Origin: Hydrolagus colliei
Taxonomy: Eukaryota
Assembly (NCBI GenBank): GCA_035084275.1
Contig: CM068756.1
Span: 14,694,001 to 14,758,000 of the forward strand
Length of the DNA stretch: 64,000 nucleotides
Reading direction: 5' to 3'
How positions within the stretch are numbered: position 1 is the stretch's first letter; the number at the start of each line of letters is the position of its first letter. Positions 8,301 to 55,852 of the stretch are shown piece by piece. The notes beneath the pieces are model-generated. The model saw only the letters and a program-made list of their open reading frames with translations. It was not told where the DNA came from and searched no databases. The translations under genes and the position numbers were made by a program.

Positions 8301-8352
8301 ATGGCAAGCACTGCGTTTCACTATTTCTCTCTCGTGGGGTTGCTTTCCACAG
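8301..8352 (+). CDS. Gene A exon 1, signal peptide (MASTAFHYFSLVGLLST)
   Basis: ATG in gccATGg context, hydrophobic leader, phase-1 donor G|GTAGGT; paralogous exon at 28816. Confidence 0.8.
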
Positions 8353-8579
8353 GTAGGTGCTCGGTTTGGTTAAAAAAAAACCTATGTATTTTTGTCCTAA
8401 AGTACGCGCTCCGGGCGCTACCCTGAGAGAGAGATTCGCTAGATAAATGCAAAAATGTTGTGAACGTAGTTTCGTTGCTTCACATTCAACTCCCCGACCT
8501 CACGCTGCGTATTTTCTCTGTACTCGTTTTGATCGGTTATGTATTTTACCCAATCAGTGTCTGAATTTATTCCTGATAG

Positions 8580-8897
8580 TTGCTGACGGTACTTTGATGA
8601 AAGTGACTCAACTCCCCAAACACACTGCAACTAAAGGAGGAAGCGTCACATTCCAGTGTGGCATTCCCTACTTTGATAGCAGCCCACGTATTAAAGTGTA
8701 CTGGTGGAAGTTTGGGGAGAGGGAGTACCTGCAAACAAAGCCAGATCCCAGGAAAATATTTGGTTTCGAACAAGGAGGAAGCGGCTTCTTTCAGCTCCTG
8801 GATGTGAATTTCCAGGACTCTGGAGTTTATCACTGCGCTCTGGTGTTACAGGGGAAAATAGCAGCAAATGGAACTGGATCCACTTTAACTGTTTGCC
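8580..8897 (+). CDS. Gene A exon 2, IgV domain with J-like G strand (SIRP-like receptor)
   Basis: FQC...VYWW...DSGVYHC...NGTGSTLTV; acceptor gatag|, donor C|GTAAGT; 318 nt, phase 1-1. Confidence 0.9.
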
Positions 8898-10074
8898 GTA
8901 AGTGTTAAACCATCGTAGATCTGGACCATTGCTATCTACACATGTTATGCAAACATAACTAACTATTACATTGTACTCTGAAAAGAATCAAAAGTAGAAT
9001 AAAACCTACATGTGTGTTTATCTTCCACTTTGGGGAAATGTTCCAGTTCCTGAAGAGGAATGGCATTCCCTGGTTACCCAATCCTGGAGAGTATAGGTTG
9101 GCAAGTGCCAAGGGCTGGGACCTGAGTTAGCTAAAGCCGCAAACTTGTCCCAGCAATTAAACACTTGAAAACACTGTGTCCAGCAAGCTTCCTGCCGCGT
9201 GTGTGGGGCAGTCAGCCTGCCGCTTACTGACTCGTCCTTGCTAAAGTAAATAGGGGACATGAGTGGGAAGACTCTCTGCCCCCAGCACTGTCTGCCTCTG
9301 ATCCTCGCTGATGAGCCGGGCTGGCTGGTCTGTCACCAGCAACGCTTGAGAGGCTCTGAAGACCTGCCAACGTTAGGAATGGAAACACTGACACAGAGTT
9401 GACTGAGTTGGAACATTGCGCCGCTGAGCGCGTCCCCGTAGAGCAGTTCAGTTCCAAGGAGACTCCATTCACCTCGATAGGGTAATCATTTAATAGCTAC
9501 AAACACGATAAACATGCCAGTAACCAAATTAACCCAAACCAAATAATAATAATGAATTTTAAAATAATAATAATTCGTATCATTAGGAATATACACTGAG
9601 ATTTATTCGCATCGAACTGTCCGAATAACACAATCGAGAATTGCATAACATCTCTAGAATATCCTTGTAAAGGTGGGAAACACGAAATTTATCATGGATA
9701 CTTTTAAGAAGATTGTGATAGTTTTTTTTTGCATTGATATCAGCCACTCGGCTGACTGAAAACATTGTGGAAATGAATCCTTACCTCGTTGACGGTTTAA
9801 ATAGAAAATAGCAGCCGCGTTTTATTCTCGCTTGGGCTATCTTTTTTGTGTGAAGTCATTTACTTACAGGTGAACTAGATTCAATAATATCAATGTTGTT
9901 TCATTACTTTGGGAAACTGTGATTCCTGGAGATTAAATAAATGCTATTACTGAATATGCCGTTAAGTAAGAAATACATAAATCAGATCAATTTGCGGCAG
10001 AAAATTTAATCGGATATAAATCAGAATAAACGTTTCTCCAACTGAAGTTGTGTAATTCGGTTCCAATATGGAGG

Positions 10075-10375
10075 TTTATATCGCGGTGCCTCGAGCCTCA
10101 CAAGCGAGAGACCTGTGCTCCATTCCAGGAGCACAGGTCTCTCGCTTCTCACTCCGATGTGAGGAGTGAGGAACCTTGGGCAAGGTTCCTCACTCCTCAC
10201 ATCGGATTATAATCCCAGAAGAGGATCCACAACAATACATTGATCATAAATTGTCTGTGCGCAATTGGCCGCCGCGTTTCTGCCACAAACGTAAAAGTAC
10301 ATTCTGTGAGGCGCTTGGAGACGTACAGAAGATGTGAAAAGCACTATGTGAAATGCAAGCATTATTATTGTTATT
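10075..10375 (+). mobile_element. Deu-type SINE with rearranged double-hairpin head, abutting the C1 acceptor
   Basis: Core tgtgcgcaattggccgccgcgtttc and tail aaatgcaagcattattatt; head contains two perfect stems. Confidence 0.75.
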
Positions 10376-10388
10376 ATCTAATTTACAG

Positions 10389-10700
10389 TTCCACCAACGT
10401 CGCTGAAGATAATCCCAAGATTCAGACAACATAATACACCCGTATCTCTGACTCTTGTGTGTCAAACGGCTGTGTATTACCCGAAGAATCTCACGCTGAC
10501 TTGGTATAACAATGGCACCGAAATTACAACCGGAATAAATACCACTGAGCAGCAGCATCCAGATGGATTGTATAGAACTTCCAGCTCACTGGAGGTGGCA
10601 CCACCTGTCTTGAATGGGACTGTTTATACCTGTACTGTATCACACATCAGCCTCCAGGCTTCAGAAACCGCCAATTACACAGTTCAGCTTTCCGGAGAAA
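10389..10700 (+). CDS. Gene A exon 3, C1-set Ig domain
   Basis: LVCQTAVYYPKNLTLTWY...DGLYRTSSSL...YTCTVSHISL is a C1-set signature; 312 nt, same length as the gene C C1 exon. Confidence 0.9.
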
Positions 10701-11044
10701 GTAACGTGCCATACATCTTATTATCAATCCGCAGTAAATGTTCGCATGATTATTGCAATTGATCGTAAAGCTAATTTATAATTATTTAAAAAGAAAATCC
10801 ACTTCTGATTCAATGTATTAGAAATGTAGGTACTAATATGTGTGAGTTATTTCCCCCCCCAAATCATACAAGAAAACGCATTACTAACATAAAATTAGAA
10901 ATTCACTAACATAATCTTTATTCTGGTACAACCTGGAGTTAATTAAACTATAAGTTAGTTATCAGGCCACAAACATATTGTGTTGAGAAAAGAAATAAAT
11001 TACACACTATAACCTATCGTTTCTTTATTTATCTTACCATTTAG

Positions 11045-11146
11045 AAGGAAATAATTATTGGATCGCTGGATGTGCAGGGGGTGCACTGATATTTCTAATA
11101 GCTTTAATTATCATTGGAAAGCGATGCCAATTAATGAAACGGAGAG
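11045..11146 (+). CDS. Gene A exon 4, transmembrane, uncharged (WIAGCAGGALIFLIALIIIG-KRCQLMKRR)
   Basis: Hydrophobic run followed by basic residues; AG/GT sites keep frame; 102 nt like the gene D TM exon. Confidence 0.85.
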
Positions 11147-11409
11147 GTGAGAAACATCTGTTTTTTATTGAAATTAAATTATATTACTCGTATTTTAATT
11201 GAATGTTTCAGTGTGTAAACGAGACATCCACGGGTGATGCAGTGGGAAACGGGTTGGAAGACTAAATATCTGTGTAGCTCCTTAATGATTCTTAAATATT
11301 AAGGATGTTCAGAATTTTTATTCATTCCAGTCCGCATGCTATTTTAAATTCCTATTGTAGAAATGTAATACCTGTACATATTTCATTAATTTAATCTCAT
11401 TAATTTTAG

Positions 11410-11453
11410 ACTCCCATAAAAAAACGAATGGATCGCACAGTTCTGGAGAACAG
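11410..11453 (+). CDS. Gene A exon 5, short cytoplasmic exon (DSHKKTNGSHSSGEQ)
   Basis: 44 nt, phase 1-0, homologous to 54282-54325. Confidence 0.8.
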
Positions 11454-11529
11454 GTAACTTTATATAATTTATCTCAGCAGGTTTATCATCTTGCAAGCTG
11501 ATATTGAACGAAAACACAGAGATTGTTCT

Positions 11530-11780
11530 TTATAATTATAATTCTTGCATTTGATCAGAATACACTGTGAAGTGAATTGACGGTATAATTGTCGGTGAAA
11601 TGCAGCAGCCAATTGCAGACAGCAGTGTCCCACAAGCCGTCGTGGATTGAAATGACCAATTTTTTTCGTGATTATTATCAGACAGGTGGAAACTTGCCCA
11701 AGGTTTCGCCCTGCCTGTAATTGAACCCAGGTCTCCCGTTTGCACGTCAAATGCTTTAATCACAGAGCTAGAGGAGTCCA
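11530..11780 (-). mobile_element. Deu-type SINE copy (gene A intron)
   Basis: Same core/head as 430-755. Confidence 0.7.
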
Positions 11781-12264: not shown

Positions 12265-12348
12265 GGAGCTGACAGTATCACATTGTATTTGACATGTTCC
12301 CAGCAATCTCAAAGACCTAAATATCAGGAAAGGACAGCACACACCCAG
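12265..12348 (+). CDS. Gene A exon 6, degenerate tyrosine-module exon (GADSITLYLTC...TAHTQ)
   Basis: ttttacag| acceptor, CAG|GTGAGA donor, 84 nt phase 0-0, open frame. Confidence 0.6.
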
Positions 12349-12858: not shown

Positions 12859-12966
12859 CCAAAGGGAGCAAACAGGAACAAGCCAACATATGCATTGATG
12901 GATTTCTCTGGCTCCAAGAAAACAGGAAAGGCTAAACCTACCAACAAGAATACAGAATACGGCGAG
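12859..12966 (+). CDS. Gene A exon 7, cytoplasmic with PTYALM and TEYGE|V motifs
   Basis: ctttccag| acceptor, GAG|GTAAGG donor, 108 nt phase 0-0. Confidence 0.8.
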
Positions 12967-13089
12967 GTAAGGGTAATAAACCTCATGAAGCTAATAGTCA
13001 AGAAATGTTACAATACTAGGTATCAAAGCTGATTATTGGTTCATCTTGAGCATACTCCCTTCCATATAGATTAGGTGTCACTTATGGGT

Positions 13090-20806: not shown

Positions 20807-20935
20807 GTCAAACAAGGGGTAAACAAGCTGACTTACGCTGCTCTGGATTTGGGCAGCTCAACAAAAATGGGAAAGCCTAAATCTAACAAGAATACACAAT
20901 ATGCTGAGCTACATATCAAAACTACAAACGCGTAG
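20807..20935 (+). CDS. Gene A terminal exon, ITIM LTYAAL and TQYAEL, stop
   Basis: ctttacag| acceptor, 43 codons ending TAG; clear paralog of exon 7; total CDS 1149 nt = 383 codons. Confidence 0.8.
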   Translation, partial: VKQGVNKLTYAALDLGSSTKMGKPKSNKNTQYAELHIKTTNA

Positions 20936-24432: not shown

Positions 24433-25699
24433 AAACCCTCATTGGCCTCCATCACCCTGTTGCTATTTCCTGCCAAAAACAGGTAAATCTGTCCTGTATT
24501 GTCTTCAGAAAGGATGAAAATTATTTCCAGAATTTGGGTGCAAGGTGGCTGAAGACTCGCTGGCTGATGGTGGGCTGGGTGGGTTGAGGGACATGGAGCA
24601 GGCAGGAGCCACTGAGTGGAGGTAACATACACATTGGTAAGGGATCACAGAGGTAGGGTGGGGCACGGCAATGGAGTGCTTTAAAGATGAGTACCAGGAT
24701 CTTGAATTGAATCCTCTGAATAGTAGGGGGATCCACTCCCTCCACTCTAATAAGTCCAGCCTCCTCCTTGTCCCCTAAATCCTCTTCTCCACCATCAGTA
24801 TCTGTGCCATCAGCCACTGTGCTCCGAAAATTTGGAGCTCCCTCTCTCAACACCTTCATCTCACCCACTCCTTTGCCAACTTCAGGTCATGCTTGAGGAA
24901 CTTTCTCTTTGACAGCACTTATGGTCACTTTCACCCTCACCCTGGCTTGGCCTTGGGCTCCACCTTAATGAAGCACTCTCAGATTCCACTCTCCTCAAGA
25001 GCATGTTGAAGTTGTTTTTGTGCTTTAGCAATTCTGGAGTCCATTTAACATCTTCCATCAGCTGTTGACCCACTTTGCAGATGCTCGCAATCAACATGGT
25101 TGAATGATCATTGCAGAAAGTCTTGTGATATGCCAACCACCTTGATGTTTCAGAGGTCTAGTCCCAGTGCCACATATCTGAATAGCTAGCGCTCGAAGAT
25201 GTGCTCAAAAACATCCCAATCTTGCATCAAAAAAGACCCAATAGCACCTTAAACGACTGGGGAGGTGGGGGGAAAAAATCAGGTTCGTTTTGGTGTGCAT
25301 CTGTGGCCAGTTTACCTCCAGGTACACATTTCTACTCAGGGCATTTCTTTTGTTCACACTTGAACAAAATAATAATTTTAACAAATAATAATAATAACAA
25401 ACAATAATTTGGTCACTCAATTCACATCTGTTTGTGGGACCCTGCTGTGCACAAATGGCTGCCGGGTTTCGTCCACAAATATGCAATGAATTCACTTGAT
25501 ATAGTATATTTTGTGAAGCGTTTTGAGATGTCTGGAAGATGTGAAAATGCAAGGATTATTATTATCATCATACAATAGCCAGAGGAAACCTTTGGATGCG
25601 TTCCAAGGAGGTTATTCAGGAAAGCTGGTTGGAGACAGTCTTACACACCACAAGTTTAACCTCAATTTGGACCTGCCTAACTCTAAAGATGAAAATATC

Positions 25700-27720: not shown

Positions 27721-28815
27721 TAGCAATCTACAACATACAAGCGTATGAAAAAAACCCTAACCCTTCCTCACTCCCTTTGCCTTCTTCCTCTCTTTCTAGT
27801 TTCAGGTTTCGGCTAAAGACCTTTCTGTTCGACTGCGCGATGGGTCACTTTGTTCCCCTTCCCCTGGCATGGACCCGGGATCCGTTTTTGTGAAGCGCTC
27901 TGAGACGCCATCCAGCTTGGAGGGCGCTATATAAACCAAAGTTGTTGTTGTTGTTGTTGCAATCTCCTACAGTCAGGAAGTTTCCACCAAGGGAACCTAA
28001 TTACTAATCAACAATTCTTCCTTACATAGTGTACAAGAAAATCAATGAATTTCCGAATATTCCAGAAATCATTACATACTTCAACTTTTTTATGATTGTG
28101 TGCTTTAAAGTACGTATTTTCTTACTTAAAAAAAGTATAATCTGCACTCCAAGTTGTATTCTTGTCGATCACAATGAGAATTGTTATTAGGTTTCCACAA
28201 TGAGTCTTATTTTAATGCAGCAAATTGTTTCATTACGAACAAGAACAATCTATTAGGATAATGTTTAATTTCAATTGAAGGACATTTGTTCATCTGTGAG
28301 AAATTTAAACGAACAGAAGTCAGGTTTAAAACTATCACATTTTAGCAATACACAACTTATAGGCTTATGAAAAAAATGAAGCAAATATCAGATTTGATCC
28401 ATAAATTCCAAAACATTTATAGAATATTTGGGTTTTTGTGCATTCAACGGTTGAAAATGTATTCATTTGTTAAAATAAGTGATTCTGAATATATTCAAAT
28501 ATAATTTTTAAAGAACTGATTATTTTGATGTACCAGACTAAGAATACTGCAATAGCACAACACAATATCTTGTGCATATGTTGTTTGAAAAGGTCCCTTG
28601 AAATGGGTACCTTGCATCGTTATTCGTGGTAAGTCATTTTTAGTCGCACTTAATGTAGACAACAGCTTTTTGCAAATGGAAACCAATTAAACGTGTTTGC
28701 TCAATCTACAGAGGCAGGACGTTAAACGTCACTCACTTAAATTCATTTTAGCATTGACCACCCCTTAGTACAGATCAGCAGTGAGTTCAGATAGTGTCAG
28801 GTAGTGATCCGAACT

Positions 28816-29371
28816 ATGTCAAGTGTCATGTTCTACTATTTCTCTCTCATGGGGTTGCTTTCCACAGGTAGGTTTAATTTTTTTAAAATAGTTTATATTT
28901 ATAAGTGCTACCCTGAGAGAGAAGCGCTATGTAAATGAAACACGTTGTAAACAGTTTCATTGATGCGCTTTACCTCATGCTTTATATTTTCTCTGTACTC
29001 ATTTTCAAAGGCTATATATATTACTCAATGTTTGAATTTATTTCTGATAGTTGCTAAATGTGCTGTGGTGAAAGTGACTCAACTTCCCAAACACACAACT
29101 ACAACCAAAGGTGAAAGTGTGACTTTCTACTGTGCCATTGCCCATTTAGAAGGCAATTTACGTATAAAAGTGTACTGATGGAAGCTTGGGGAGAGGGAGT
29201 ACCTGCAAACAAGGCCAGATCCCAGGAAACAGTTTGGTTTTGAACAAGGAGGAAGCGGCTTCTTTCAGCTCCTGGATGTGAATGTTCAGGACTCTGGAGA
29301 TTATCATTGCGCTCTGGTGTTACAGGGGGAAATAGCAGCAAATGGAACTGGATCTACTTTAGCTGTTGATG
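28816..29371 (+). pseudogene. Gene B, SIRP-like pseudogene (leader 28816-28867, V exon 29051-29371)
   Basis: Paralog of gene A exons 1-2; the first Trp of the C-strand YWW motif is TGA at 29176-29178; no C1/TM exons follow because homology to the gene A intron stops at the hAT near 30090. Confidence 0.88.
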
Positions 29372-30092
29372 GTAAGTGTTAAACCAGCGCAGATCTGGAT
29401 CGTTGCTATCTTATCATATTAGGCGAGCATATCTAACTAATACACTGTACTCTGAAGGGAATCAAAATTAGGCTGAGAACGACATGAGTGCACATCATTT
29501 AATTTGGGCAATTTTCTAGTAGCTAACCCTAACCTGCTTCTGAAGAATATAGTCTGGCAAGTACCAATGTTTGGGTCCCGCTGGAATTTAATCAGCTAAA
29601 GTCACATACTTGTCCAGCAACTTGAAATAACTGTCTGACAAGATTCCCGCTGTTTATTTTGGGTCGACAAGCCCGGCGTTACTCATTTGTATTGCAAGGT
29701 TAAACAGGAGCTGAATGGGAAGAATCTCTGCCCCCATAACTGTCTGCCTCTAATCCCTGCCAATGAACCTGGCTGGCGGGTCTGTCACCAGCAAGGTCCG
29801 GGATTTCTCAGGACCCGTCAATGTTTGGAATCGAAATACTGACACAGAGGATTGACTGAGTTGCAACATTGCGTTGCTATGCTCATGGAGCCAGTTCAGC
29901 TCCAAGGAGACTCGGATAACCCCAATAGGAGAATCATCTAGGAGCTATAAACACGATAAACGTGCAAGTAACCAATTCAATGCAAGTCAATATTTGTTAG
30001 GTGTGTACTGGAAATAATTCGAATAGAACTGTCCTAGTAGCACAATTCAGGGTTGTTTAACATCTCTAGAATATCCATGTGTAGGTGGGATC

Positions 30093-32766: not shown

Positions 32767-32952
32767 CAATTTAAGATAAGTGACAGTAATCAACTTTGAT
32801 GTGGACAACTATTTTCACAAATCCCCACGATACACTGGGAACCAATCACCTGACCTGACAGAGGCTGGAAGTCAGTCACCACGCCTTAGATGTAAAATCT
32901 TAAACAACTATAACTACTTACTACAGCCAACGATTATTAGTCTCAATACCTA

Positions 32953-33013
32953 ATGAGAATGTCAGCGAGTTTTGTGTTTCAGCATGCATGTCTGTTAGGA
33001 TTGGTTTCCACAG
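32953..33013 (+). CDS. Gene C exon 1, signal peptide (MRMSASFVFQHACLLGLVST)
   Basis: Phase-1 donor G|GTGTGT; paralog at 48318. Confidence 0.78.
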
Positions 33014-33175
33014 GTGTGTATTCTTTTTTTAATCTAATTTGACAAAAATGGACATAGATTATATCATTTTATATAATTTTCTATTGATAGAGCAAGTCTG
33101 TATCTTGCTCTGTGCATTACTTTGTCTTTTGCTGTAATTCTCTTTCTAATTTATGTTTGAATTTATTTCTGATAG

Positions 33176-33496
33176 TTGTTGACGGTACAATGATCAGAGT
33201 GACCCAAATCCCAGATCATATGGAGGCAATTAGAGGCACTAACGTTACCTTCCACTGCATGTTTCCTGACGCTCAATCCAACTCACGTGTAAAAGTTTAC
33301 TGGTTGAAAGAGGGAGAGAATAGCTACCTGCATACAAGGGAGGATAAAAGACAACTGTTTGAGTTTGAAAGTGAACAAAAAAGCTTCTTTAAACTCCAAA
33401 ATGTGAATCTCCAGGACTCTGGTGTGTATCATTGTGTTCTCGTGCTTCAGGGGAAAATAGCGGCCAGTGGACCTGGATCACGTCTGGATGTATGGG
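33176..33496 (+). CDS. Gene C exon 2, IgV domain
   Basis: FHC...VYWLK...DSGVYHC...SGPGSRLDVW; gatag| acceptor, G|GTAGGT donor. Confidence 0.9.
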
Positions 33497-34691
33497 GTAG
33501 GTATGGTTTCAGTGAAGAACGGCAATATTCCAAAATAGATTTTGAGCCAAAAACTCTGACCATGTGTGAAGGACATTTTGATTGTTCTTAGAATATGAAA
33601 CAGGTGTTTCAAAATGTTATCCTTTTAAATGAATCTTCCTGGGACCAGGTGGGGTCTGCTTGGAGATGACTCCCGAAGTATTCACTTGACAATAGAATGT
33701 CTGAATCATATCAACCCTCTGCAATGGCCTCAGTGGTCCAGGTATTGACCCAGGCAGGGCTGCAGTATTCTGGGGGCACTTCTATACAGCCCAGCCAGCC
33801 TGACTCATCATTTGGAAGAGCAGAGAAAGCCTGGTATAATGGGCCACTGTTAACTCTGCAGGCAATATAGCCTTCTTGGGTATGGTTATGTCACATAGCT
33901 CATACACTCATGTGCAATAGCAAATCTTAATTTTATTATTCTTATCGTATTCTTACATGTTTGAAAAGTACATGCTACAGTGTTGGCCGGGAAGGTTGCA
34001 TTACCAGCAGTGCCTTTATTCTGATAAGATCAACAGCCATCCCGCCATTTGAGATTAACAATAAAAAAAATTACATGTTTGAAAAGAGAAGTATTTATTG
34101 GTGTGCTGATGAACACATCCATGATTGTATCCCCAGAAAAAAATGCAAATACAAAAAACTTTATGATTTGAGGGATTTCAACAAAACAAGGACCTATATC
34201 GGATGCAATGGTATTCAAAAATAATTTAATTAAGGTTTTGACAATTTCAAACCACAACTTTTTATTACCGGTAAATAAACTAAATACATTTAGTCAAATA
34301 CATTTTTAGTAATGAACTATTTCTTCACTTTACTGAGTAGGAATACAACAGAGCATACCAGTGTTGGCTATATTGCTGTTGTGACTATGTATATGGCTCG
34401 AACATTATTTTTCCCTCCGGAGTTTCTATCGATAACTATAAAAAACTTTTCCTTATTGCTCCATTCCAGGTAAGAAAACAGAATTAAAAGATCAAATTTG
34501 TATTAACGGGGAGATACATCAGAAGTATGAAAAATGATGTTTTTAGTGGAGATTGAGAAATTCAATGACAATTGTGCTAGCTTTACATGGTGTATTTGTT
34601 TACTTTTTGGAAAAACTGTAGTGACAATAAAGTTTAATCTCCACCAACTGAGTGTAAGTTCTGTAATTCTGCTGTACTGTTCGTTCTACAG

Positions 34692-35003
34692 TTCCTCCAA
34701 CTCCACTGAAAATCTTCTCCAACGTTACTAAAATAGGATCGCCAGTGCCTCTGACTCTTGTGTGTGAAACCACTGCATTTTATCCAGAGAATCTTAACCT
34801 CACTTGGTATAAAAATGGCACCAAAATTACATCTCGAATAGATATCTCTAAACAACGGAACGCAGAGGGATTGTATGAAGTTTCAAGCTTTGTGGAAGAG
34901 AATAAGCCTGTCCAAAGTGGGGTTGTTTATATCTGTCAGGTTTCTCACATCAGCCTTCAGATTCCAGAAATTGCTAACTATATAGTTCAGTTCTCCGACA
35001 CAG
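34692..35003 (+). CDS. Gene C exon 3, C1-set domain
   Basis: LVCETTAFYPENLNLTWY...YICQVSHISL; 312 nt, donor CAG|GTAGGA. Confidence 0.9.
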
Positions 35004-36475
35004 GTAGGATGCCCACAATCTTACTGTCAATTAATTTTTTCATGGTTTTTTTTAGTATCTGATTATATTTCCTGCGTGTTTACGAGTTGAAGCAAATCCC
35101 ATATTTTCTTTCTATTGTATTGGTGAGTTCGGATTTGACTGCTCATTTTCACTGATATCGGAATGAGATCTAGAGATCACTCCGTGGATGCACCCAGCCG
35201 TCCGTTTATAGTAATGATAATAATAATCATCTGTGTCCTTGGCTTTGATATAACACTTGGTAATGTTATTGATGCATCTCAAAATGCTTCACATAATGTA
35301 TATGAAATTGTATTGATTGTGTATATTGACATTAATTTCACCTAAATTGAACATTGCGACCCATGCTCATAGTTTTCCGGTAGAAAGATAGTACGAGAAG
35401 TCAGCTACAATTACAATTTTCACAGATATGCATATAAACTATACATTGCACTCTTTATGCAGAGTAGTCCATGGGACATACCACAGTTGGGGGCTTGGAA
35501 GCTGGGGCTTGATCATAGCTTCTGTCAAAGAGGGAAATGTTAAAGTGGTATTAAAATTAATTAAGAAGGGGGCCAGGCAGAGGGATTAAGGCAGGGATTT
35601 CCAAAGATTAGGACGGGAAATTCGACCAAGGATTACAGTTGTTGGACTTCCCCAGGCTTGCTCGTGACATCTGAGTAATGGGGACGACAGAGGAATGAGG
35701 TTAGAGAGGTTGGGGGCTGTTCGAGTATGAACATGAGACTGAGGGACCTGAAATCTATTCCTTTGAAGCCATGAAGGGAGTCCACGGTCATCAGCGTGCT
35801 GATTTTAACTATGTGAGGACACCAGTGATCCAGATTTGGATGAATTGGACCTTGTAAATGGTGGAACTGGGTGAGCCAGTAAGGAGTCTGTTTGCACTCA
35901 ATGGTGAGATGCAAAAGATGTGAAAAAGTTTATTAGTGGCATCTGGTGTAAGTCAAATACTAGTCGTCTTTCTCTCTTCCAAATAATTAACATTCAGCAA
36001 GCTTCCCTACTCCCCACACCTCTGTTTACCTAGCAATAGTTATTATTCGATTGGTGGTTTGCTTTTCCTGAAGTAATAAAGCCTTGAAAAAAAATCATAT
36101 GTTATTCACTCAATGCACGATTGTTTGTGGGACACTGCTGTGCTCAACTGGCTGTTGCCGGTTGCTCCCAAAATATACAGTCAATTCACTTTATGGTGCA
36201 TTCTGTGAAGCCTTGGAGATGTCTCAAAATATGATAACAACAAAATTAGATTTTGCTCCCACCTTGCTCATTGGGAGAACGTCCAGGTGCAAGTGCAAGG
36301 ATGACATTGACAATTATTATTATTATTAATAAAAACCTACCTGATATTTAATCTCCATTAGAGTTCAGTGATGTTTGCCTTGGCATGTCGTGACTTGTGT
36401 CACCCCCCAGTCTAAACCAATTTCTGTTGAACCCTACCCTGCACACTGGCTCATGGTTCTGTCTTTACTTCATAG

Positions 36476-36591
36476 TTTCTAACAGAGAACGCAATATTAT
36501 AATTTTCCGGTATGTATGCAGTGCGTTGGTAATACTTCTCTTGACTATCATCGTTGTGGACCATTTCAGAATTCATCCCATTCAAAGGTAA
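36476..36591 (+). CDS. Gene C exon 4, TM with Arg and short tail (NIIIFRYVCSALVILLLTIIVVDH...IQR*)
   Basis: ttcatag| acceptor in phase 1; hydrophobic run containing R; total CDS 810 nt = 270 codons. Confidence 0.75.
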
Positions 36592-43019: not shown

Positions 43020-43564
43020 TGTTCAATTCTGGTCACCACACTACAGAAAGGATGTGAAGGCATTGGAAAGGGTACAACAAAGATTTACTAAGATGGTGCC
43101 AGGATTGAGGGACTTCAGCTATGAGGAGAGGCTAGATAGGCTAGGGTTATTCTCTCTGGAGCAGAGAAGATTGAGGGGAGACCTAATAGAGGTTTATAAG
43201 ATCATGAGGGGTTTCGACAGGGTAAATAGAGAAAAACTATTTCCACTCGTGGGTGAATCTGTGACTCGTGGTCACAGATTTAAAATAGTTTCAAGGCGCA
43301 GTAGAGGGGAACTGAGGAGAAATATTTTCACTCAGTGAGTTGTTCGAATCTGGAATGCATTGCCTGAAAAGGTGGTGGAGGCTGATTCGATAACAACTTT
43401 TAAAAGGGAATTAGATCTTTATTTAGGGAGAACGGGTCTATTAGGCTATGGGGAGCGGGCAGGGCAGTGGGATTGAATCGCTCTTTTCAAAGAGCCGGCA
43501 CAGACTAGATGGGCCGAATGGCCTCCTTTTGTGCCGTAAAATTCTATGATTCTATGATTCTATG
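43020..43564 (+). mobile_element. CR1 LINE 3' fragment inserted in a SINE
   Basis: KALERVQQRFTKMVPGL...RRLRGDLIEVYK; (ATTCTATG)n tail; SINE halves on both sides. Confidence 0.9.
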
Positions 43565-44339
43565 AAAACGCAGTGCCAATTGCACACAATAATACATTAT
43601 TATATTGAAGTGTTTCAAAGGAAATTACTGAGAAATGCACTGACTGTATAGTAGGCAAACACTGACATCAATTTCTGCAAAGTAGAATTTTACCAACAGC
43701 CATGAAATTGTGGTAATTGTTGCGATTTTGCATTTTTACAGTCGTGAATAGAAATGTAGCTTTACAAAAAAAATCCCATGTTTGAAGCGACAAACTCAAA
43801 TTATGTGAAATCTCTGTACTGTGTATTTCTGCCTAAATACTGAGGAATAATTTTTAACATGAGAAAAATTTGTGATATTACTATTTTGAAAATTAGTTTT
43901 TATACCAAGTATCTTGAATTGCATTCAATAAAATATTAGCTGAATATATGTCGGGTTTTTTCATGACCAAATAGGCATGCAGAGATATGTGCCTCATACC
44001 AGGAGCTGTTACAAAAATACCAACTAATCCTGCTTCACATTTTCCTGTTTGTGTTTTATGTGATTATCTTACACTCATCTGCCCAACAAGATCAACAACT
44101 TACTGTTCAAAGTGCGGCCATTCATGTTGCAATGGAGGGTATGAGGGACATGTAGGAATCAAAGCCACTCAATTATAGGCAGCAATAGTTGGTTGGTGAT
44201 TAAACAGGCTGGAGAGGTAGCGAGGTGCCAGGGCATGAAGACAATATAATTATAAACCTGCCTAGCAGCTATATACCTTTAGTGTTCATTGTCATTTTTG
44301 ATCAAATGTGTTAGTTTAAGCGGGTTAAGCTTTTTGGTC

Positions 44340-46744: not shown

Positions 46745-47600
46745 TTGATATTCATAGAATTATAAAGCACAAAAGGAGGCCATTCGGCCCATCTAGTCTG
46801 TGCTGGCTCTTTAAACAGAGCAACTCAATCCCACTGCCCCGCTCTCTCCCCATAACCTAACAGACCCGCCCTTCCTAAATAAAGATCTAGTTCCCTTTTA
46901 AAAACTGTTATGTAATCTGCCTCCACCATCTTTTCAGGCAAGTCATTCCAGATTCGAACAACCCTTCTCTTTGTTCTAGAGAGAATAAGCCTAGCCTATC
47001 TAGCCTTTCCTCATAGCTGAAGTCCCTCATTCCTGGTACCATCCTAGCAAATCTTCTCTGCACCCTTTCCAATGCCTTAATATCCTTCCTAAAGTGTGGT
47101 GACCAGAATTGTACACAGCTGAGGCCTAACCAAAGTCTTATAAAGGTTAATCAGCACTTCCTGACTTTTGTATTCTATACCCCTATTTACAAAGCCCAGT
47201 ATCCCATATACCTTCTTAATGGCTTTGTCTACCTGTCCTGCCACTTTCAAAGAGTCAGTAACACAAATCCCCACGTCTCTCTATTCCTTCACACCCTTTA
47301 AAATTGTACTATCTAGCCTATATTGCTCCTCTCATTTCTTCTCCCAAAGCATATCACCTCACACTTCTCTGTATTAAACTTCATCTGCCATGTTTCTGCC
47401 CACTTTACCATTTTATCTATATCCTCTTGCAGATGGCTACTATCCTCCTCACTATTTACTATTCTCGCTAACTTAGTATCATCTGCAACTTTGGAAACCG
47501 TACTTCCCAAACCCAAATCCAAATCATTAATGTATATTAAAAAGAGCAGTGGTACCAAAACCGATCCCTGGGGGACGCCACTGCACACTTCCCTCCAGTC
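46745..47600 (-). mobile_element. CR1 RT/3' fragment, older copy
   Basis: SGVPQGSVLVPLLFLIYINDLD...VADDTKL. Confidence 0.85.
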
Positions 47601-48317
47601 TGAAAAGCAGCCAATATTAGTTTAAAAAAAAGCTTGATGTTATTATGATTTAAACTTGAGTGCAAGTTTAAAGCAGTCAAACTGCCAGTTAAGTCTTTTG
47701 TTGGTGTTTACTGTCATTATTGTTGTTGATTTGGAAAGAAGATATCAGACCTTCTTTAACATAATTAATTCTGTGATCTTGTGATGTAATACTAATCATT
47801 TTACAACAACAAAATTACAATTGCATAGCACTTTTCGCATTGGGAAGATGTCCCATGACACATTGCTTGGAATCTGAGCTGGGGTCGTGATCAGGGATGA
47901 TATATGGATGACGTGGTGGGGGAAGGTGGGTGACCGATCGACGACACGGTCGAAGAGCAAGGTCTTGGAAGAAACATGAAATTTGCCCTGATTCATATTG
48001 ACATGAAGTACAGCTCTTTGAGTTTGGATTGAAAAGTTAGTTCCCCTTGGTAAAAAGTGTAAAAACAATAACATCAAAATAAACTTTGAGTGTTACCTTC
48101 AGATGGAATTTAGACCCTGTTGCCAATTAAATAACTGAAAGTAATCAACCTTTAAGTGGATAACTGTCTTTGTAAATCTAATCAAACACTCAGAGCCAAT
48201 CGTTTAAACTTACAGAGACAGGAAGTCAGTCGTCATGGCCTTTTATATAAATGCTTAAAACAACCGTAATTACTTAATAGTGAGCAATAATAGCTTCATC
48301 CTTGGTCTCAATCCACG

Positions 48318-48378
48318 ATGAGAATGTTGGTGAGCTTTGTGTTTCTATGTGTACATTTAATCCAGATAATTTTCACAG
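48318..48378 (+). CDS. Gene D exon 1, signal peptide (MRMLVSFVFLCVHLIQIIFT)
   Basis: Phase-1 donor G|GTATGT. Confidence 0.78.
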
Positions 48379-48528
48379 GTATGTGCTCCTTCTATACCAC
48401 AATTTGTCAAAAAGTAAGATAAATGACATAATTTGATATTATTTATTGATAGAATAAGTCTCTTCGCATTGCTTTGTCTCGCGTACTAAATTCTGTTTCT
48501 AATTAGCATTTGAATTTATTTCTGATAG

Positions 48529-48846
48529 TTGTTGATGGTACAATGACCAGAGTGACCCAACTCCCCGACCATGTGGAGGCAATTAGAGGCACGAACGTTA
48601 CCTTTCAGTGCATGTTTCCTGACACTCAATCCAACCTGCGTACAAAAGTGTATTGGTGGAAGCAGGAAGACAATGTATACCATACGAAGCCGGATAAAAG
48701 AAAACTGTTTGGGTTTGACAGCAAACAAAGCAGTTTCTTTAAGCTCCTAAATGTGAGTCACCAGGATTCTGGTGTGTATCAGTGTGCCCTCATGATTGAG
48801 GGAAAATTAGTGGCCAGTGGACCTGGATCACAGCTGATTGTATGGG
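48529..48846 (+). CDS. Gene D exon 2, IgV domain (intact)
   Basis: FQC...VYWWK...DSGVYQC...SGPGSQLIVW; close paralog of the gene C V exon. Confidence 0.9.
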
Positions 48847-50695
48847 GTAGGTATGGAATATTCCAAATTAGATATAGTGCCAAAAATTGTAGAAAAGGAT
48901 AAAAGATGTTGAATTATTTTAAGAATATGAAATGGGTGTTTCAAAATGTTGTCCTTTAAAATGTATCCTCCTGGGGGGAGGTGGGATCTGCTTGGAACTG
49001 AACTAGCTCCCGGGTAACATGCTTGCAATAGAATGTCAGAAACAGGTCAACCCTGTGGGATAGCTGTGGGATTCTCTGGTTCCTGAACCAAGGCACTTCT
49101 GAGGACAGCCCAGCCAGCCTGACTGATCAGCAGGACTTGGAGAGGCAGAGGAGTCTCTAGGGGCAGGGATTGTTCTCACTCAGCTTCCGTTAACCCTGCA
49201 GGTCAAACCCATAATTCTTCTACTTGTCCACAATGGACAAACAGGGGAAAAGCTTGTGAGATAGAGCTCTCGTTGACAAGATAAGGGGTTTTAGCTGTTT
49301 AGATTCCAACAATACCCAACAAACACTCAGGGATTCCCAAGCTTTGGTTTTGCTAGCAATTGCATAATACTCTGTGGAATTACAAAATGCGGGATGGGTC
49401 AGTTTGGAAAGTCAGTGCACATTTCATTCCAATACATGGGAATTTCCACATGTGGGTGGATACATGGTTTGGTTTTGGATACTCTTCTACTGCGCGTATT
49501 AGACCACTGGTTAATCAAAACGTCTCTTTAAAAAAGAACTTTACTAAATAACTGAATGTTGTATATCTCCATATGTTTGAGAAGCACATGCTAGAGTGTT
49601 GGGCAGGAATGTCGGGGAGCTTTGCATTTCCAGAAGTGCCTTTATTTGGATACGATCAATATCCAGTCTGCAGGATGGGATTGATGTTAGAAAAATGACA
49701 CTGTTCGGAGAGACGAGTTTCTTGGTGTGCTGAAGAACATATCAATTCTATCTGTCTCCAGATAAAATTGCTCATTCAAAACACTTGTGATGTGCATTTG
49801 AGGCATTTCAAAATCACAATCAAATACAGTATAAGGATTTTAGAAAAAATTAATTAAGATTTAGACAATTTCAAGCCCATATTTTTATTCAAATCAAATT
49901 CAGTCATCAGTTAGATATACTTAGTTGAATACAATATCAGTAATTAACTATTTCTTCATCTTACTGATGAGGAAAACAATAGCGCAATAGCGCATATCAG
50001 CATTGGCTACTTTGCCGTTATCACATATATTGCTTCAAAATGTATTATCTTCTCTGGATTTTAAATCTGGAACTGTAAAACAATCAAGTTTTTCTTATTA
50101 CTCCAGTTCCATTTATGGAATAGTTTGAAAAGATAAATTTGTATTAATGGGGAGAGGCAATCGGAATTATGGAAAATAATATTTTATTTAGTGAAAATTG
50201 AGACATTCACTGACATTTTGTGCTGGCTTTTCATTGTATATTTATTTGCTTTTGGGGGAACTGTAGTGACAAAGTATCTTTCCCATAACAACTTTTATAG
50301 TTGTCGTGAATGGCGAACAAATCAAAGTTAGAACAAAATATTTAAAAATACTAATCCCTGCATTTGGCTTTTCACATCTTCTAGACATCTTAATCCACTT
50401 CACGGAATATGCTATAAAGTGAATTGACCTCATATCTGTGGACAAAACACGGCAGCCAATTGTGCACAGCAATGTCCCGCAAACAGTCATAGAATGAAAA
50501 AGATTTTGTCCAGCTTGGAATTGTTTAAATACAAAGCAAATGAATCAGAATCAAAATGCTGTATTGAACGGAATAAAATGAAAATCATAATAAAGTTTAA
50601 TCTCCACCAGTTGATTGTACGTTTTTGTAATTCTTCTGTACTGTTTGATGTGAAAGGCGCTATACAAATGTAATTTTGTTGTTGTTGTTCTATAG

Positions 50696-50996
50696 TTCCT
50701 CCAACTCCACTGAAGATCTTCTCCAAAGTTACAAAAATAGTTTCGCCTCTGGCTCTTGTGTGTGAAACCAATGCATTTTATCCAGAGGATCTTAACCTCA
50801 CTTGGTATAAAATGGCACCAAAATTACATCTGGAATAAACATCACTAAACAGCAGAATGCAGAGGGATTGTATGAAGCTTCAAGCTTTGTGGAAGAGAAC
50901 AAGACTGTCCAAAGTGAGGTTGTTTATATCTGTCAGGTTTCTCACATCAGCCTTCAGATTCCAGAAATTGTCAACTACACAGTTCAGTTCTCCAAC
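50696..50996 (+). pseudogene. Gene D decayed C1 exon
   Basis: Versus gene C: 1-bp deletion in the A run at 50809-50812 giving TAA at 50836-50838; donor segment gacacaggtaggatgcc deleted near 50994; about 40-bp L2-type tail inserted in the acceptor (50648-50690). Confidence 0.85.
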
Positions 50997-51499
50997 AATG
51001 TTATTGACAATTAATGTTAATTGTTTCTCACCCAAATATTTTATCACAATCTGATTATATTTTCTGTGTGTTTACGAGCTGAGGTAGGTCCCATATTTTA
51101 TTTCTATCATATGGTGAGTGCAGATTTGCCTGTTCATTTTCACTGTAATGTGCTGTAATTCAGAGATGACTCCATGGATGCATCCAGGCGTCCGTTTCTA
51201 ATACAATTATTCCTCGTTTAACATTGTAGTTGTGTTCTCAAGAAGTACGACATTAAGCAAACCCGTTTTTCCGATATAAATTAATGTATAAACTGGAGTT
51301 AGGTTATTTTGTACATTTTTGAAGAAAATGTTCTAAAAAAAAATTATATTTGCTCCCTGACTGCCTGCCCGGCTCACTCTCTTGCTCCCTGCCTGACCTG
51401 TTCATTTCCACCCGCTAGTGAACGACGCAATAGCGAATGTCACAACGTTAAATAGTTATATATTCCCTATGTATCAGCAACGTAATAATAAAACAATTT

Positions 51500-52220: not shown

Positions 52221-52669
52221 CTTAAGCAGGGTCTACTTGTAATATTAATAACAACAACAAAATTACATTTATAAAGCGCCTTTAATATCAGGAGGATGTC
52301 CCAAGCCGCTAATTGTCAATTAATCTTTATTTTTTTCACAAGAATATTTCCTGATATTAATTACAACAAATTAGGTAATGTCCTCTTAGGCTTCCCATGC
52401 AAACATACTTATATTTTTCTATCAAATCTAGTTTTTACTATCTACTTTGCAATATATCCTGTGAAACATTGGAAGACATGCTTCCAATGTGAAAGGCATG
52501 CTATTCAATGGTTATTATTATTTACTATTATGTCTCTTTACTTGTGCATCTTCAACAACAAATTAGATTTGCATAGTGTCTTTCACAGTCATTGGTAAAT
52601 TCTGCTTACATCACTAAATGGAATACAGTACTCCTGTTTTACCTTTTCACACTTGTATTGTCATTACAG

Positions 52670-52771
52670 GAAATAATACTGATAAATTAATACAGGTATC
52701 TGGATGTGCAGGATTGACATTTCTTGTGCTTTTAGTCATTGGAATATCATGTCGATTTATGAAACGGAATG
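52670..52771 (+). CDS. Gene D TM exon, uncharged core (SGCAGLTFLVLLVIGISC-RFMKRN)
   Basis: 102 nt phase 1-1, homologous to the gene A TM exon. Confidence 0.85.
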
Positions 52772-52968
52772 GTAAGACATATTAAGGTTTTAATCAGACT
52801 TAAATTTTATTTTTACTTTAATCTAATACTTCAAAGAGTAGATTAACAGGTACCTGGTTGGCATGGCCATTGAAGTGATTTGAAGGATAAAGAATAAACC
52901 AATGCAATTTATTTTACTGCAATTTACATCGCATTTACATCGATGAGGAGAAATTTTTTATTACATCG

Positions 52969-53224
52969 CTGAGGAGAAATTTTTTCACTCAGCGAGTTGT
53001 TCGAATCTGGAATGCATTGCCTGAAAAGGTGGTGGAGGCTGATTCGATAACAACTTTTAAAAGGGAATTAGATCTTTATTTAGGGAGAACGGGTCTATTA
53101 GGCTATGGGGAGCGGGCAGGGCAGTGGGATTGAATCGCTCTTTTCAAAGAGCCGGCACAGACTAGATGGGCCGAATGGCCTCCTTTTGTGCCGTAAAATT
53201 CTATGATTCTATGATTCTATGATT
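52969..53224 (+). mobile_element. Short CR1 3' end in a gene D intron
   Basis: Near-identical to the 3' ends at 43310-43564 and 58387-58640; (ATTCTATG)n tail. Confidence 0.9.
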
Positions 53225-54281
53225 TAGAAATAGATAAGACCAAACTGGTGAATTTAATTAGATGTTTGTTTACAACAAAAGTACAGCGAATATCTCAAGT
53301 ATTGGCAGAAAAGTGCATATAGAAATTTTAGAATTTATATCAAACATGTCTTGTTTGGTGGCATTTACATTAGTGGTGAGTGTAAATATTGCAGAAATAT
53401 TCTGGCAAAATCTGACATCAAAAAATGTTTCATTTAAAAAATTTAACCAAGACAAATAAAGCAGGAAATCAGGTTGGAAATATAGACAGAAAGGGATTAT
53501 AATCAGTTCATGTCGTTTTTCAGTCTGAGAAGGAGCAAAATACACTGGTTGTTCTCATTGTCTTTTATCAATGCCTGTCATGAACACAATAAAAATAACG
53601 ACACCGACTTGCGGCCCATGTCCTCTACCATTGCAAACTCCGTGATCCCATCTCCCCCATCCTTGCCTGACTCCATTGTCTCCCCAGCATCCAGAGGATC
53701 CAATTCAAGATCCTGGTCCTCATATTTAAAGACCTCTACTACCTCGCCCCACCCTACATCCGTGACCTCCTATCCTTTTACCAACCTGCAATCCATATCC
53801 CAATCCCATAAAATCGGTCACTCAATCCACAACTGTTTGTGGGACACTGCTTTGCGCATTTGACTGCTGCTTTTCACCCACAAATGTACAGTCAAGTCAC
53901 TTTACAGTATATAATGTGAAGTGCTTTGAGATGTCTAGAAGATGTGAAAAGGCGCTATATCAAATGCAAGGATTATTATTATTATACAAAAGTGGAACTC
54001 ACAGCCTAATTTGGATATATTTTAGGTTGGTGTTTCTCCATGTGTCAGATACCAGGCTCACCAAAAACACATGATGTCTGGGTTGTTTTAAATTATTTTA
54101 CATGTAATGGTAAAGGAAGATTGATGCTGCCCTTGTCCTGCACCTTGTTTTATATTTGATAAAGTGTCCCAGAAAGCTCTTGGGCAACCAAATCACTTGC
54201 GTTTATTCACCTGTTTCCTGGGAATATAAACAACTTGAAAATTGGCTACACATTTCACTTTTTGAATTTCTTTCATTTCAG

Positions 54282-54325
54282 GATCACACAGGAAGCTGAA
54301 TGGATGTGACATTCGTACAGATCAG
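54282..54325 (+). CDS. Gene D short cytoplasmic exon (GSHRKLNGCDIRTDQ)
   Basis: 44 nt phase 1-0, homolog of 11410-11453. Confidence 0.8.
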
Positions 54326-55023
54326 GTAAAGTACAGATTTAATTCAAGAAGATGTTTCTGTGTTATGATTGAATAAGATCCTTGGTGCTATAATGACGTC
54401 CGAATATTTTGAACAGGGACTGGATATTCTTACCATTGTTAACATCGAATGCTGCATTTATTCTTTTCTATTTCTTACAATTCTTGTCCCCTTCACTGTG
54501 TCATTCATATATTCCCCCTAAGCTATCGATATGCTTAATACATGGCTCAATGTGCAATACAACACTGTTGCATAAATCTGCATAAAACGATGCAAGTGAT
54601 ATGTTAATACTGTATTTGAAATATAGCTGCTGATGTTTATTTCTATTTCAATAGCCTGAGATTTGTACATTAAACAAATATGGGACTGTATTATATGATG
54701 TTTAATGCACAGACATGAGCAGTGTGTTTAAAATGGGCCTGAAAATATTAGCTGTACTTTGAGGTACAGTAAACTACAGGTCCAAGACTCTTCCTCGACT
54801 CCTTTCAGGCCCAACTGAATGCGAGGTTTGGTGAGAGATGAATGCATACCTGTATCTGGGTCTCCAATACAGATTCATTGCATTTAGCCGGTCTCCCCGC
54901 AGATTATATAACAAGCCAAGTTTCAAGTTCCAAATTAATATTTAGATACTGCATTGCTTAACCAACAGTGGAGCCCAGTGAAGACCAGGAACCAACCAAG
55001 TAACCTCACCTTGTGTTTTACAG

Positions 55024-55110
55024 AAAGTCCATGAAACAATGTATGAGACAGTGGGATATGTCCCATCTGATTTGAAAACACATCCACAGGAATTGGTAGT
55101 AGGTGCTAAG
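55024..55110 (+). CDS. Gene D cytoplasmic exon with ITSM TMYETV
   Basis: ttttacag| acceptor, AAG|GTACAT donor, 87 nt phase 0-0. Confidence 0.65.
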
Positions 55111-55648
55111 GTACATACAATCATGATACACACCCTTTATAACTAATATGATATTCTGCTATATTACATAAAATTAAACTGATATTTATTCTTTAGAATA
55201 AAGTTGATTGTGGAATGCAACAGCTTTTCCTCCTCCTAAAATTTTTCCTCTCCTCAGACGCTTGTCTGGATTCAGTTTCTTTTGCAAATTAGTGCACAAA
55301 TAGTCCAAATAATCATTCTTCATGTGTCAGATGAGTCAGTTAGTATGGCAAAATATGTGACACTGGAGAGATCACCAATTGAATATGTCCATAGTGAGAT
55401 TAATAACCACTTCTCACTGGCCAATTAACACTGCCCACAAACTAAGAGATACCAATTCTATTTGCATTTATCACGGCATAAAAAGGAGACTGATGACTGG
55501 GATCTCTGGCTTTATAAATCTGAGTTTAGCATTGAGTGGTGCTTTACTGGATGAGAAATAGGGTGCGAAGTTTTAAATAGTTACTCGAGATTTCTAAATG
55601 CTGACAAAATGAATTAGTAACTGGAAATCTCAACCTTTATCTTTACAG

Positions 55649-55852
55649 ACCAAACAAGTAGCAGCCGGTAACATGTTGACATATACAAATTTGAACTTGT
55701 CTGGCTCCAACACAAAGGAAAAGAGAAATCCTGAATGCAGTGATAGTAAAACAGAGTATGCCCAGGTACACGTGAGAAAACACGCAGCAGCACAACAGAC
55801 CACATACAAGGAACCAACCGTAGCAGAATGCTACAACATAGGTGGAAGCTGA
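55649..55852 (+). CDS. Gene D terminal exon with ITIM LTYTNL and ITSM TEYAQV
   Basis: ctttacag| acceptor, open to TGA; motif order resembles the SIRP-alpha ITYADLNL...TEYASI pair; a possible internal donor at 55766. Confidence 0.8.
   Translation, partial: TKQVAAGNMLTYTNLNLSGSNTKEKRNPECSDSKTEYAQVHVRKHAAAQQTTYKEPTVAECYNIGGS

Follow-up and report, generated by a model that had tools for sequence, protein, structure and literature searches.

The 64,000-nucleotide window analysed here (Hydrolagus colliei, assembly GCA_035084275.1, contig CM068756.1, positions 14,694,001 to 14,758,000 of the forward strand; all coordinates below are those of this window) contains a tandem cluster of four related immunoglobulin superfamily (IgSF) gene copies, named A to D. 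Judged from sequence, this cluster very probably represents a cartilaginous-fish family of paired, non-rearranging, membrane-bound V(J)-C1 receptors, in which a variable (V) domain with a joining-like (J-like) strand is followed by a C1-set domain. It extends from position 8301, the ATG of gene A, to position 55852, the final base of the stop codon of gene D. A tblastn search of the evident immunoglobulin (Ig) open reading frames (ORFs) against the window yielded four V exons, those of A, B, C and D, with E-values from 1e-29 to 1e-68, and three C1 exons, all of them on the plus strand and in the order V-C1, V, V-C1, V-C1. That the four V exons belong to one tandemly arranged family of germline-joined V(J)-C1 receptors can, together with the paired-receptor reading, be stated with considerable confidence.

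The pairing is visible in genes C and D, which are sisters in the maximum-likelihood trees of both domains (support 99/91 in the V tree and 100/99 in the C1 tree) and share 70% identity in V and 83% in C1. Gene C comprises a leader exon (32953..33013, placed by splice site and phase), a V(J) exon (33176..33496, placed by tblastn and splice sites), a C1 exon (34692..35003; Pfam C1-set, E 4.3e-14) and a last exon (36476..36591) for the transmembrane (TM) segment and a short tail. Its ORF is complete over these four exons, and the arginine in the TM segment (IIIFRYVCSALVILLLTIIVV) is followed by the ten-residue tail DHFRIHPIQR and by a TAA stop codon that ends the TM exon, in agreement with the first-pass annotation, which had described C as having a TM arginine and no tail tyrosines. 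Gene D combines a leader exon (48318..48378, placed by splice site and phase) and an intact V(J) exon (48529..48846) with an A-like TM exon (52670..52771) for an uncharged TM segment and basic stop-transfer residues, a first cytoplasmic exon (54282..54325, recognised by its splice sites and tail homology) and a terminal exon (55649..55852), which encodes the immunoreceptor tyrosine-based inhibitory motif (ITIM) LTYTNL, the immunoreceptor tyrosine-based switch motif (ITSM) TEYAQV and a TGA stop codon. Similar ectodomains are thus attached to opposite signalling modules within one cluster. As C and D unite sister ectodomains with different TM and tail modules, they carry the signature of paired receptors, and the earlier proposal of a paired inhibitory/activating family is borne out.

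At the DNA level the homology between C and D (32832-35213 versus 48186-51203) begins upstream of the leader, continues to approximately 200 bp past the C1 exon and then stops. Past this end, C has its TM exon with the arginine; D has an A-like TM exon (69% DNA identity to that of A) and tail exons. Within the homologous block the nucleotide identity is 73% in the V part, with a synonymous divergence (dS) of 0.34, but 83% in the C1 part, with a dS of 0.15. The greater divergence in V than in C1 suggests a mosaic history of C and D, by gene conversion or by mosaic origin, although the C1 exon of D is dead. The ratio of nonsynonymous to synonymous divergence (dN/dS) is 0.4-0.5 throughout, which indicates that coding constraint persists. 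Domain-wide positive selection was also considered and was rejected on the basis of the same ratio.

The C1 pseudo-exon of D (50696..50999) differs from that of C by a 6-bp deletion and by a 1-bp deletion in TATAAAAATGG, with a stop a few codons further on, and its phase-1 GT donor, which reads ACAG|GTAGG in C, has changed to AATGTTATT. As a consequence of this frameshift and of the lost donor, D is unable to make a V-C1 protein. The only in-frame option is a splice from V to TM, which keeps the frame because all exons concerned are of phase 1, and which would give a V-only protein of 242 residues with an intact ITIM/ITSM tail. Of the description of D as an intact paralog with an uncharged TM segment and ITIM/ITSM tyrosines, the TM segment and the motifs stand, but the C1 exon is dead and D has a V-only product at most.

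The exon design is uniform over the cluster. Exon boundaries were set by eye and then checked by a script, and all predicted junctions are of the AG/GT type with a pyrimidine tract, the lost C1 donor of D being the exception. In A, C and D the exons from leader to TM are all of phase 1, the tail exons of phase 0; the phase-1 Ig exons noted before are hence confirmed, with canonical splice sites, in these three genes. The second domain is of the C1-set type by Pfam (E 1.2e-16 in A and the value given above in C), and no second C1 exon per gene was found by tblastn within the window. Every V exon continues unbroken through a J-like G-x-G-S-x-L-x-V strand to its splice donor, and a motif scan of the V exons revealed no heptamer (CACAGTG/CACTGTG) of a recombination signal sequence (RSS). 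The statement that all four paralogs share the layout of leader, V, C1, TM and tail applies to A and C, but not to B, which consists of leader and V only, nor to D with its broken C1 exon.

Gene A has an ORF that is complete over eight exons with consensus splice sites. Its leader exon (8301..8352) ends in phase 1 at the donor CAG|gtaggt and is followed by a V(J) exon (8580..8897) with the J-like stretch NGTGSTLTV and 73% identity to the V domain of the Callorhinchus milii protein P0001, by a C1 exon of phase 1-1 (10389..10700) and by a TM exon (11045..11146), in which an uncharged TM segment precedes basic stop-transfer residues (KRCQLMKRR). The tail is encoded by a first cytoplasmic exon (11410..11453), which matches the P0001 tail and is bounded by splice sites, by a second one (12265..12348) with a degenerate ITIM cassette (SITLYLT...RTAHTQ) and by a third one (12859..12966) with PTYALM and TEYGE|V, where read-through past the donor would lead to a stop at 13032. 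An intact exon of the terminal type (20807..20935), encoding LTYAAL, TQYAEL and a stop, is located 7.8 kb downstream of exon 7 of A, past debris of long interspersed nuclear elements (LINEs). It is probably the last exon of A, otherwise a relic of a lost copy; the assignment to A is based on the C. milii P0007 gene, which has the same splice from the third to the fourth cytoplasmic exon after Y-x-Q. The tail of A would accordingly contain the tyrosine pair PTYALM/TEYGE(V) and, if exon 8 is used, also LTYAAL/TQYAEL. Within each pair of A or D the tyrosines are 22-25 residues apart.

Two further observations concern gene A. Read-through of the exon 5 donor (window 11454-11498) yields VTLYNLSQQVYHLAS and a stop, with 24 of 28 residues matching the C-terminus of C. 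milii P0001. As such conservation is unusual for an intron, the read-through may represent another isoform of A, with a short tail and a YxN motif. The V domain of A ends (8890-8897) with an extra cysteine (LTVC), which is also present in several C. milii members and is replaced by a tryptophan in C and D; it could be an unpaired cysteine for dimerisation.

Copy B is indeed a pseudogene, as previously annotated, with a TGA in place of the invariant tryptophan codon (around 29175-29177) in its V exon (29051..29371), but it is a 5′ fragment rather than a copy with the full layout. Its leader exon (28816..28868) was recognised by homology to A, and the homology between A and B (8098-9527 versus 28609-29975) covers promoter, leader, V exon and approximately 0.7 kb of intron 2. 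C1, TM and tail exons of B were found neither by tblastn nor by DNA comparison within the window. Beyond the end of the A-B homology (around 29975-30090), two adjoining ORFs of 252 and 87 residues are located on the minus strand (30539-31541), with a weak DUF4371/transposase-like match (E 0.008). An insertion or rearrangement near these ORFs may have truncated B.

A search with protein A returned ten proteins, all from cartilaginous fishes, the best being from C. milii with 72% identity, and a profile search extended the family to 49 proteins from holocephalans, sharks and rays. The genera represented are Callorhinchus, Heptranchias, Heterodontus, Scyliorhinus, Hemiscyllium, Mustelus, Carcharodon, Pristiophorus, Amblyraja, Leucoraja, Mobula, Hemitrygon and Pristis. 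Outside the cartilaginous fishes the profile search gave only two matches, a SIRP-like protein of lungfish (E 6.5e-31) and a loach protein annotated as myelin-associated glycoprotein. The window's own proteins are not among the collected family proteins. Both long-tail ITIM forms and short-tail forms with a TM arginine are present in the family. Automatic names given by NCBI include SIRP-alpha-like, SIRP-beta-1-like, tapasin-related-like, Ig lambda-1-like, CD276 homolog and NCR3-ligand-1-like, and V-only isoforms of C. milii family genes (e.g., P0042) carry the name NCR3-like. In the literature searched, which did not include the key shark NCR3 papers, the family was known only by these inconsistent automatic names. 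An exact-protein look-up of P0042 returned no record. Homologues are already in the public annotations of more than 12 species, and the paired-receptor principle is well known.

The window genes are tied to individual C. milii genes. A is sister to P0001 in both trees (100/97 in the V tree and 100/96 in the C1 tree), and P0006, a form with a TM arginine, is placed next to C and D in the V tree (98/92). When domains are compared singly, the identity to P0001 is 73-76% for A and B, and that to P0006 is 61-68% for C and D. The cartilaginous-fish origin assumed for this DNA is therefore well supported, with the best relatives all coming from C. milii and the window genes being sisters of its genes in both trees. 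The genome is of the holocephalan type, near to that of C. milii but distinct from it. The TM exon of C shows homology to the TM regions of shark proteins and of P0006. Six proteins, that of C and five from Callorhinchus, Heterodontus, Scyliorhinus (two species) and Mustelus, have the arginine at a fixed distance of 19 residues ahead of a D/V-H-F motif, which is located at the inner helix end and is followed by a tail of 3-15 residues. The activating TM module is hence conserved from chimaeras to sharks and, to judge from this distribution, was probably present in the chondrichthyan ancestor.

The C. milii P0007 gene is built of eight exons in the layout described for A, and it adjoins relics of V exons and a further copy. 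On the stretch in question (MU249845.1, at about 15.55 Mb), orphan V exons at 1538-1807 (with stops) and 24901-25140 flank the gene. A full copy follows from 27981 onwards, and this relic pattern is the same as in the window. The turnover by birth and death that had been proposed for the cluster can be seen in pseudogene B, the dead C1 exon of D, the orphan or terminal tail exon downstream of A and the V relics at the C. milii locus.

To which known receptors the family is related was addressed with profiles and trees, for which, among the references, the human NKp30, SIRP-alpha and B7-H6 sequences were confirmed against PDB chains, and for which the NKp30 references in the V tree are mammalian only. 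With hmmsearch, the family V profile scored 37 bits against CD79b, 31 against NKp30, 29 against the lungfish SIRP-like protein, 26 against the T-cell receptor (TCR) alpha chain, 22 against SIRP-alpha and 10.2 against the V domain of B7-H6; with hhalign, TCR-alpha, NKp30 and SIRP-like V domains were tied at E-values of about 1e-9. The family C1 profile scored 53 bits against the lungfish SIRP-like protein, 50.7 against the C domain of B7-H6, about 51 against Ig-lambda C and domain 3 of SIRP-alpha, and 49 against the beta2 domain of class II of the major histocompatibility complex (MHC). In the V tree the family forms one clade in 99% of the bootstrap trees, apart from SIRP (with CD79b), NKp30 (with CTLA4/CD28), Ig/TCR and B7-H6. 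The C1 tree groups it, on a weak branch (87/42) and without internal resolution, with SIRP domains 2 and 3 and the C domain of B7-H6, apart from the C domains of Ig/TCR and from MHC/beta2-microglobulin. A search of 1.8 billion proteins with the V profile did not reveal the nearest outgroup among the best 150 matches, which were giant multi-Ig proteins, with whole-protein scores that sum over domains, and family members. The family appears to be a lineage of its own, made up of V(J)-C1 signalling receptors of cartilaginous fishes; it is SIRP-like by architecture and would work in the manner of SIRP or other paired receptors.

True orthology or co-orthology of the genes with tetrapod SIRP-alpha/beta, which would make them members of the SIRP family proper with a CD47-like ligand, is clearly less likely than not. 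SIRP genes share the plan of a VJ-type V domain and C1-set domain(s) with paired ITIM and charged-TM forms, the spacing xTYAxL(22-25 residues)TEYxxV presumably resembles the tail of SIRP-alpha, and many members are named SIRP-like by NCBI. In addition, the lungfish SIRP-like protein is the only protein of this kind that the profile search found outside the chondrichthyans, its C1 domains head the C1 profile scores, and the C1 tree places the family on the side of SIRP and B7-H6, away from Ig/TCR and MHC. However, SIRP and the family stay apart in the V tree, the C1 tree has only a weak node here and does not separate the family from the C domain of B7-H6, and hhalign ranks MHC-II beta2 and B7-H6 C first for C1, above SIRP, and gives near ties for V. 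The family furthermore has one C1 domain where SIRP has two, and apart from the receptor cluster no conserved gene that could provide synteny is present in the window. SIRP as the best match in the PDB was rejected: the lead of SIRP-gamma for C1 had come from adding up two C1 hits, and with domains taken singly MR1/MHC alpha3 and the C domain of B7-H6 score higher. Pairs of ITIM and ITSM are common to many inhibitory receptors of the IgSF. The first-pass annotation had regarded a germline J-like V plus C1 with a TYxxL/TEYxxV pair as the hallmark of SIRP, but such pairs are not restricted to SIRP; its term SIRP-like fits as a description of architecture, while the separate V clade, the weak C1 branch and the near ties of the profiles do not establish the family as SIRP.

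It is rather improbable that the genes represent the shark NCR3 (NKp30) family, in which case the NKp30-type VJ domain would be the core and C1 an optional extra. The NCR3-like names of the C. milii V-only isoforms, the alignment of the V profile with the mammalian NKp30 profile (hhalign probability 97.4%, E 1.2e-11) and the limitation of D to a V-only, NKp30-like product fit with this idea, as does the TM arginine near the outer end of the helix, which we take to be positioned as in human NKp30. Yet the V tree, limited to mammalian NKp30, does not group the two but places NKp30 with CTLA4/CD28; the NKp30 scores are not above those of TCR-alpha or SIRP-like V domains; and A and C have an in-frame, intact C1 exon, V-only forms being just D and some C. 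milii isoforms. A homologue search seeded with human NKp30 and the V-only isoforms returned only mammalian NKp30. Chromosomal positions point in the same direction: in the supplement of PMC10751288, white shark genes annotated as NCR3 are neighbours of AIF1 and PRRC2A at 101.9-102.3 Mb of chromosome 19, the MHC chromosome, whose gene list ends at 115.6 Mb, whereas the white-shark family member lies on a chromosome of 193.5 Mb. The catshark members lie on a chromosome of 198.8 Mb, and coordinates of about this size are absent from the listed catshark MHC chromosome. Elasmobranch family members thus appear to be located off the MHC chromosome, a statement which derives from chromosome lengths, not from a direct map, and has no direct bearing on the window. 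A placement of the white-shark member in MHC class III was considered, as its position (CM029971.1, 104.56 Mb) would be flanked by ATF6B and CYP21A2 if it were read on the list for chromosome 19, and was rejected because the chromosome lengths differ (193.5 Mb versus a list end at 115.6 Mb). The family is probably not the MHC-linked NCR3 family.

V-C1 ligands or chaperones related to B7-H6 or tapasin are suggested by some of the automatic names (NCR3-ligand-1-like, tapasin-related-like, CD276-like) and by the C domain of B7-H6, which scores level with any C1 reference (hhalign E 5e-15). The chance that the genes are of this kind is minimal: against the verified V domain of B7-H6 the V profile reaches only the 10.2 bits mentioned (hhalign E 2.8e-4), a J-like strand is present, the split into ITIM-tailed and TM-arginine forms is typical of receptors, and the proteins, of 230-400 residues with the V domain first, lack the N-terminal domain of tapasin. 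A robust grouping of V and C1 domains with B7-H6/tapasin-like ligands, which the first-pass annotation had named as a result that would speak against its reading, was not seen. The family is neither a B7-H6-type ligand nor a rearranging receptor.

A whole cluster in decay, without a working gene among the four copies, is very unlikely. B and the C1 exon of D are dead, the first tail cassette of A is without tyrosine motifs and LINEs and transposons have inserted throughout the region, but the ORFs of A and C are complete over eight and four exons with consensus splice sites, dN/dS is 0.4-0.5, and the TM module of C retains the conserved arginine and the DHF motif. A number of points nevertheless weigh against functional paired receptors. 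D may simply be a pseudogene, and the skipping of its C1 exon is a prediction, as is the junction from exon 7 to exon 8 in A. The 1-bp deletion in D is located in a run of A and could, taken alone, be an error of the assembly. This does not apply to the donor, the loss of which argues, together with the 6-bp deletion, that the exon has truly decayed. In the tail of A, described earlier as uncharged in the TM segment and equipped with ITIM/ITSM tyrosines, the TM segment and the tyrosine pairs are present, but the motifs are partly non-canonical, with the first cassette being degenerate and PTYALM not being a canonical ITIM. Exact-protein look-ups of predicted C and of V-only D, aimed at transcripts, returned no record, and adaptor, phosphatase and ligand roles are predicted only.

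Under the preferred reading of the cluster as paired V(J)-C1 receptors, A would be an inhibitory receptor and C the activating type of counterpart, with D being an inhibitory copy which either does without its former C1 domain or is heading to death. Phosphorylated tyrosine pairs with a spacing of 22-25 residues dock the tandem SH2 domains of phosphatases of the SHP-1/2 type, and the aspartate of adaptors of the FcR-gamma, CD3-zeta or DAP12 type forms a pair with a basic residue that is located close to the outer end of a TM helix. In A, and in D if it is expressed, phosphorylation of the tyrosine pairs would recruit such phosphatases and dampen leukocyte activation. C would signal through an aspartate-bearing adaptor of these types, with an immunoreceptor tyrosine-based activation motif (ITAM), that is bound by the arginine in the membrane. 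The similar V domains of the paired receptors may share or compete for a ligand. New pairs would come about when duplication or conversion brings the leader-V-C1 block to other TM and tail modules, and copies would subsequently decay. A confident AlphaFold model of the C ectodomain (pLDDT 89.3) folds as V plus C1, and its best fold matches in the PDB are antibody light chains, i.e., the generic V-C1 shape.

The surroundings of the genes are rich in LINE and transposon debris, with one gap of N at 56847-57037. A LINE reverse transcriptase ORF of 570 residues (RVT_1, E 3e-33) is located on the minus strand at 58474-60186, and related fragments are found inside the receptor cluster at 47313-47588 (minus strand) and 43054-43338 (plus strand). 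The gap of N lies in a GA-rich simple repeat (56680-57650; GREGE/SLPPS runs on translation), which adjoins an ORF on the minus strand (about 57900-58224) that starts with a BED zinc finger (E 3e-4). A 254-bp repeat downstream of C (43312-43565) is 99.2% identical to a copy in an intron of D (52969-53222), an identity far above that of the genes themselves, and an inverted third copy at 46752-46962 has 88% identity; it is probably a recently active short element. At 6193-6528 a 21-bp tandem repeat (units SDRQLLM or MRSCLSD on translation) is present within LINE-like sequence.

Paired inhibitory and activating receptors recur in vertebrate innate immunity, while their deep history is poorly mapped, and the cluster displays both halves of a pair in a genome of the chimaera lineage. 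Antigen receptors have been proposed to descend from a precursor with the V(J)-C1 layout, and a signalling family of this layout, bound to the membrane and apparently outside the MHC, adds a point of comparison to UrIg and NCR3. It is conceivable, though unlikely, that in this family an ancestral membrane-bound VJ-C1 receptor has survived in cartilaginous fishes; SIRP would have originated from it by C1 duplication and V-only receptors of the NKp30 type by C1 loss. If this were true, D, with its decaying C1 exon and its intact V, TM and tail exons, and the C. milii V-only isoforms would show C1 loss in progress, a loss which the phase-1 exon design makes free of any cost in frame. A link to the ancestor of antigen receptors is speculation. 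To specialists, the old activating TM module, the V-only versus V-C1 alternative with the decaying C1 exon in D and the occurrence of a VJ-C1 family apparently outside the MHC in the oldest jawed vertebrates should be of interest. A proper description and naming of the family would be useful; current views are not overturned.

Among known systems, the SIRP family (SIRP-alpha, -beta and -gamma; human 20p13) has in common with the cluster a germline-joined VJ-type V domain, with the J-like strand in one exon, followed by C1-set sequence, as well as paired forms with a tyrosine tail or with a basic TM segment and short tail, arranged in tandem clusters. It differs by two C1 domains and a lysine in the middle of the membrane, compared to one C1 domain and an arginine near the outer TM end here. 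NKp30/NCR3, of which an MHC-linked family in sharks was reportedly described by Kinlein and colleagues in 2021, shares the non-rearranging VJ domain in one exon, the TM arginine of the activating form and V-only products (in C. milii and predicted for D), whereas most members of the present family have a C1 domain and many have ITIM tails. KIR, LILR/PIR, CHIR and the teleost NITR and LITR resemble the cluster in placing closely related ectodomains on ITIM or charged-TM backbones, in their tandem arrays and pseudogenes and in their rapid birth-and-death evolution; their ectodomains are, in contrast, of the C2/I-set type or V-only, and none is known to have V(J)-C1. Ig light chains and TCRs need separate V and J segments flanked by RSSs, whereas the V domain and J-like strand are contiguous here in one exon free of the RSS heptamer. 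UrIg and UrIg2 are non-rearranging shark genes with a VJ-C1-C2-C3 structure that have been described only in elasmobranchs (PMC12227049). UrIg2 is among the best sequence matches in the PDB, and both systems consist of cartilaginous-fish genes with germline-joined VJ and C1; but UrIg is antibody-like, with V-C1-C2-C3, while the genes of the present cluster encode transmembrane signalling receptors with a single C1 domain.

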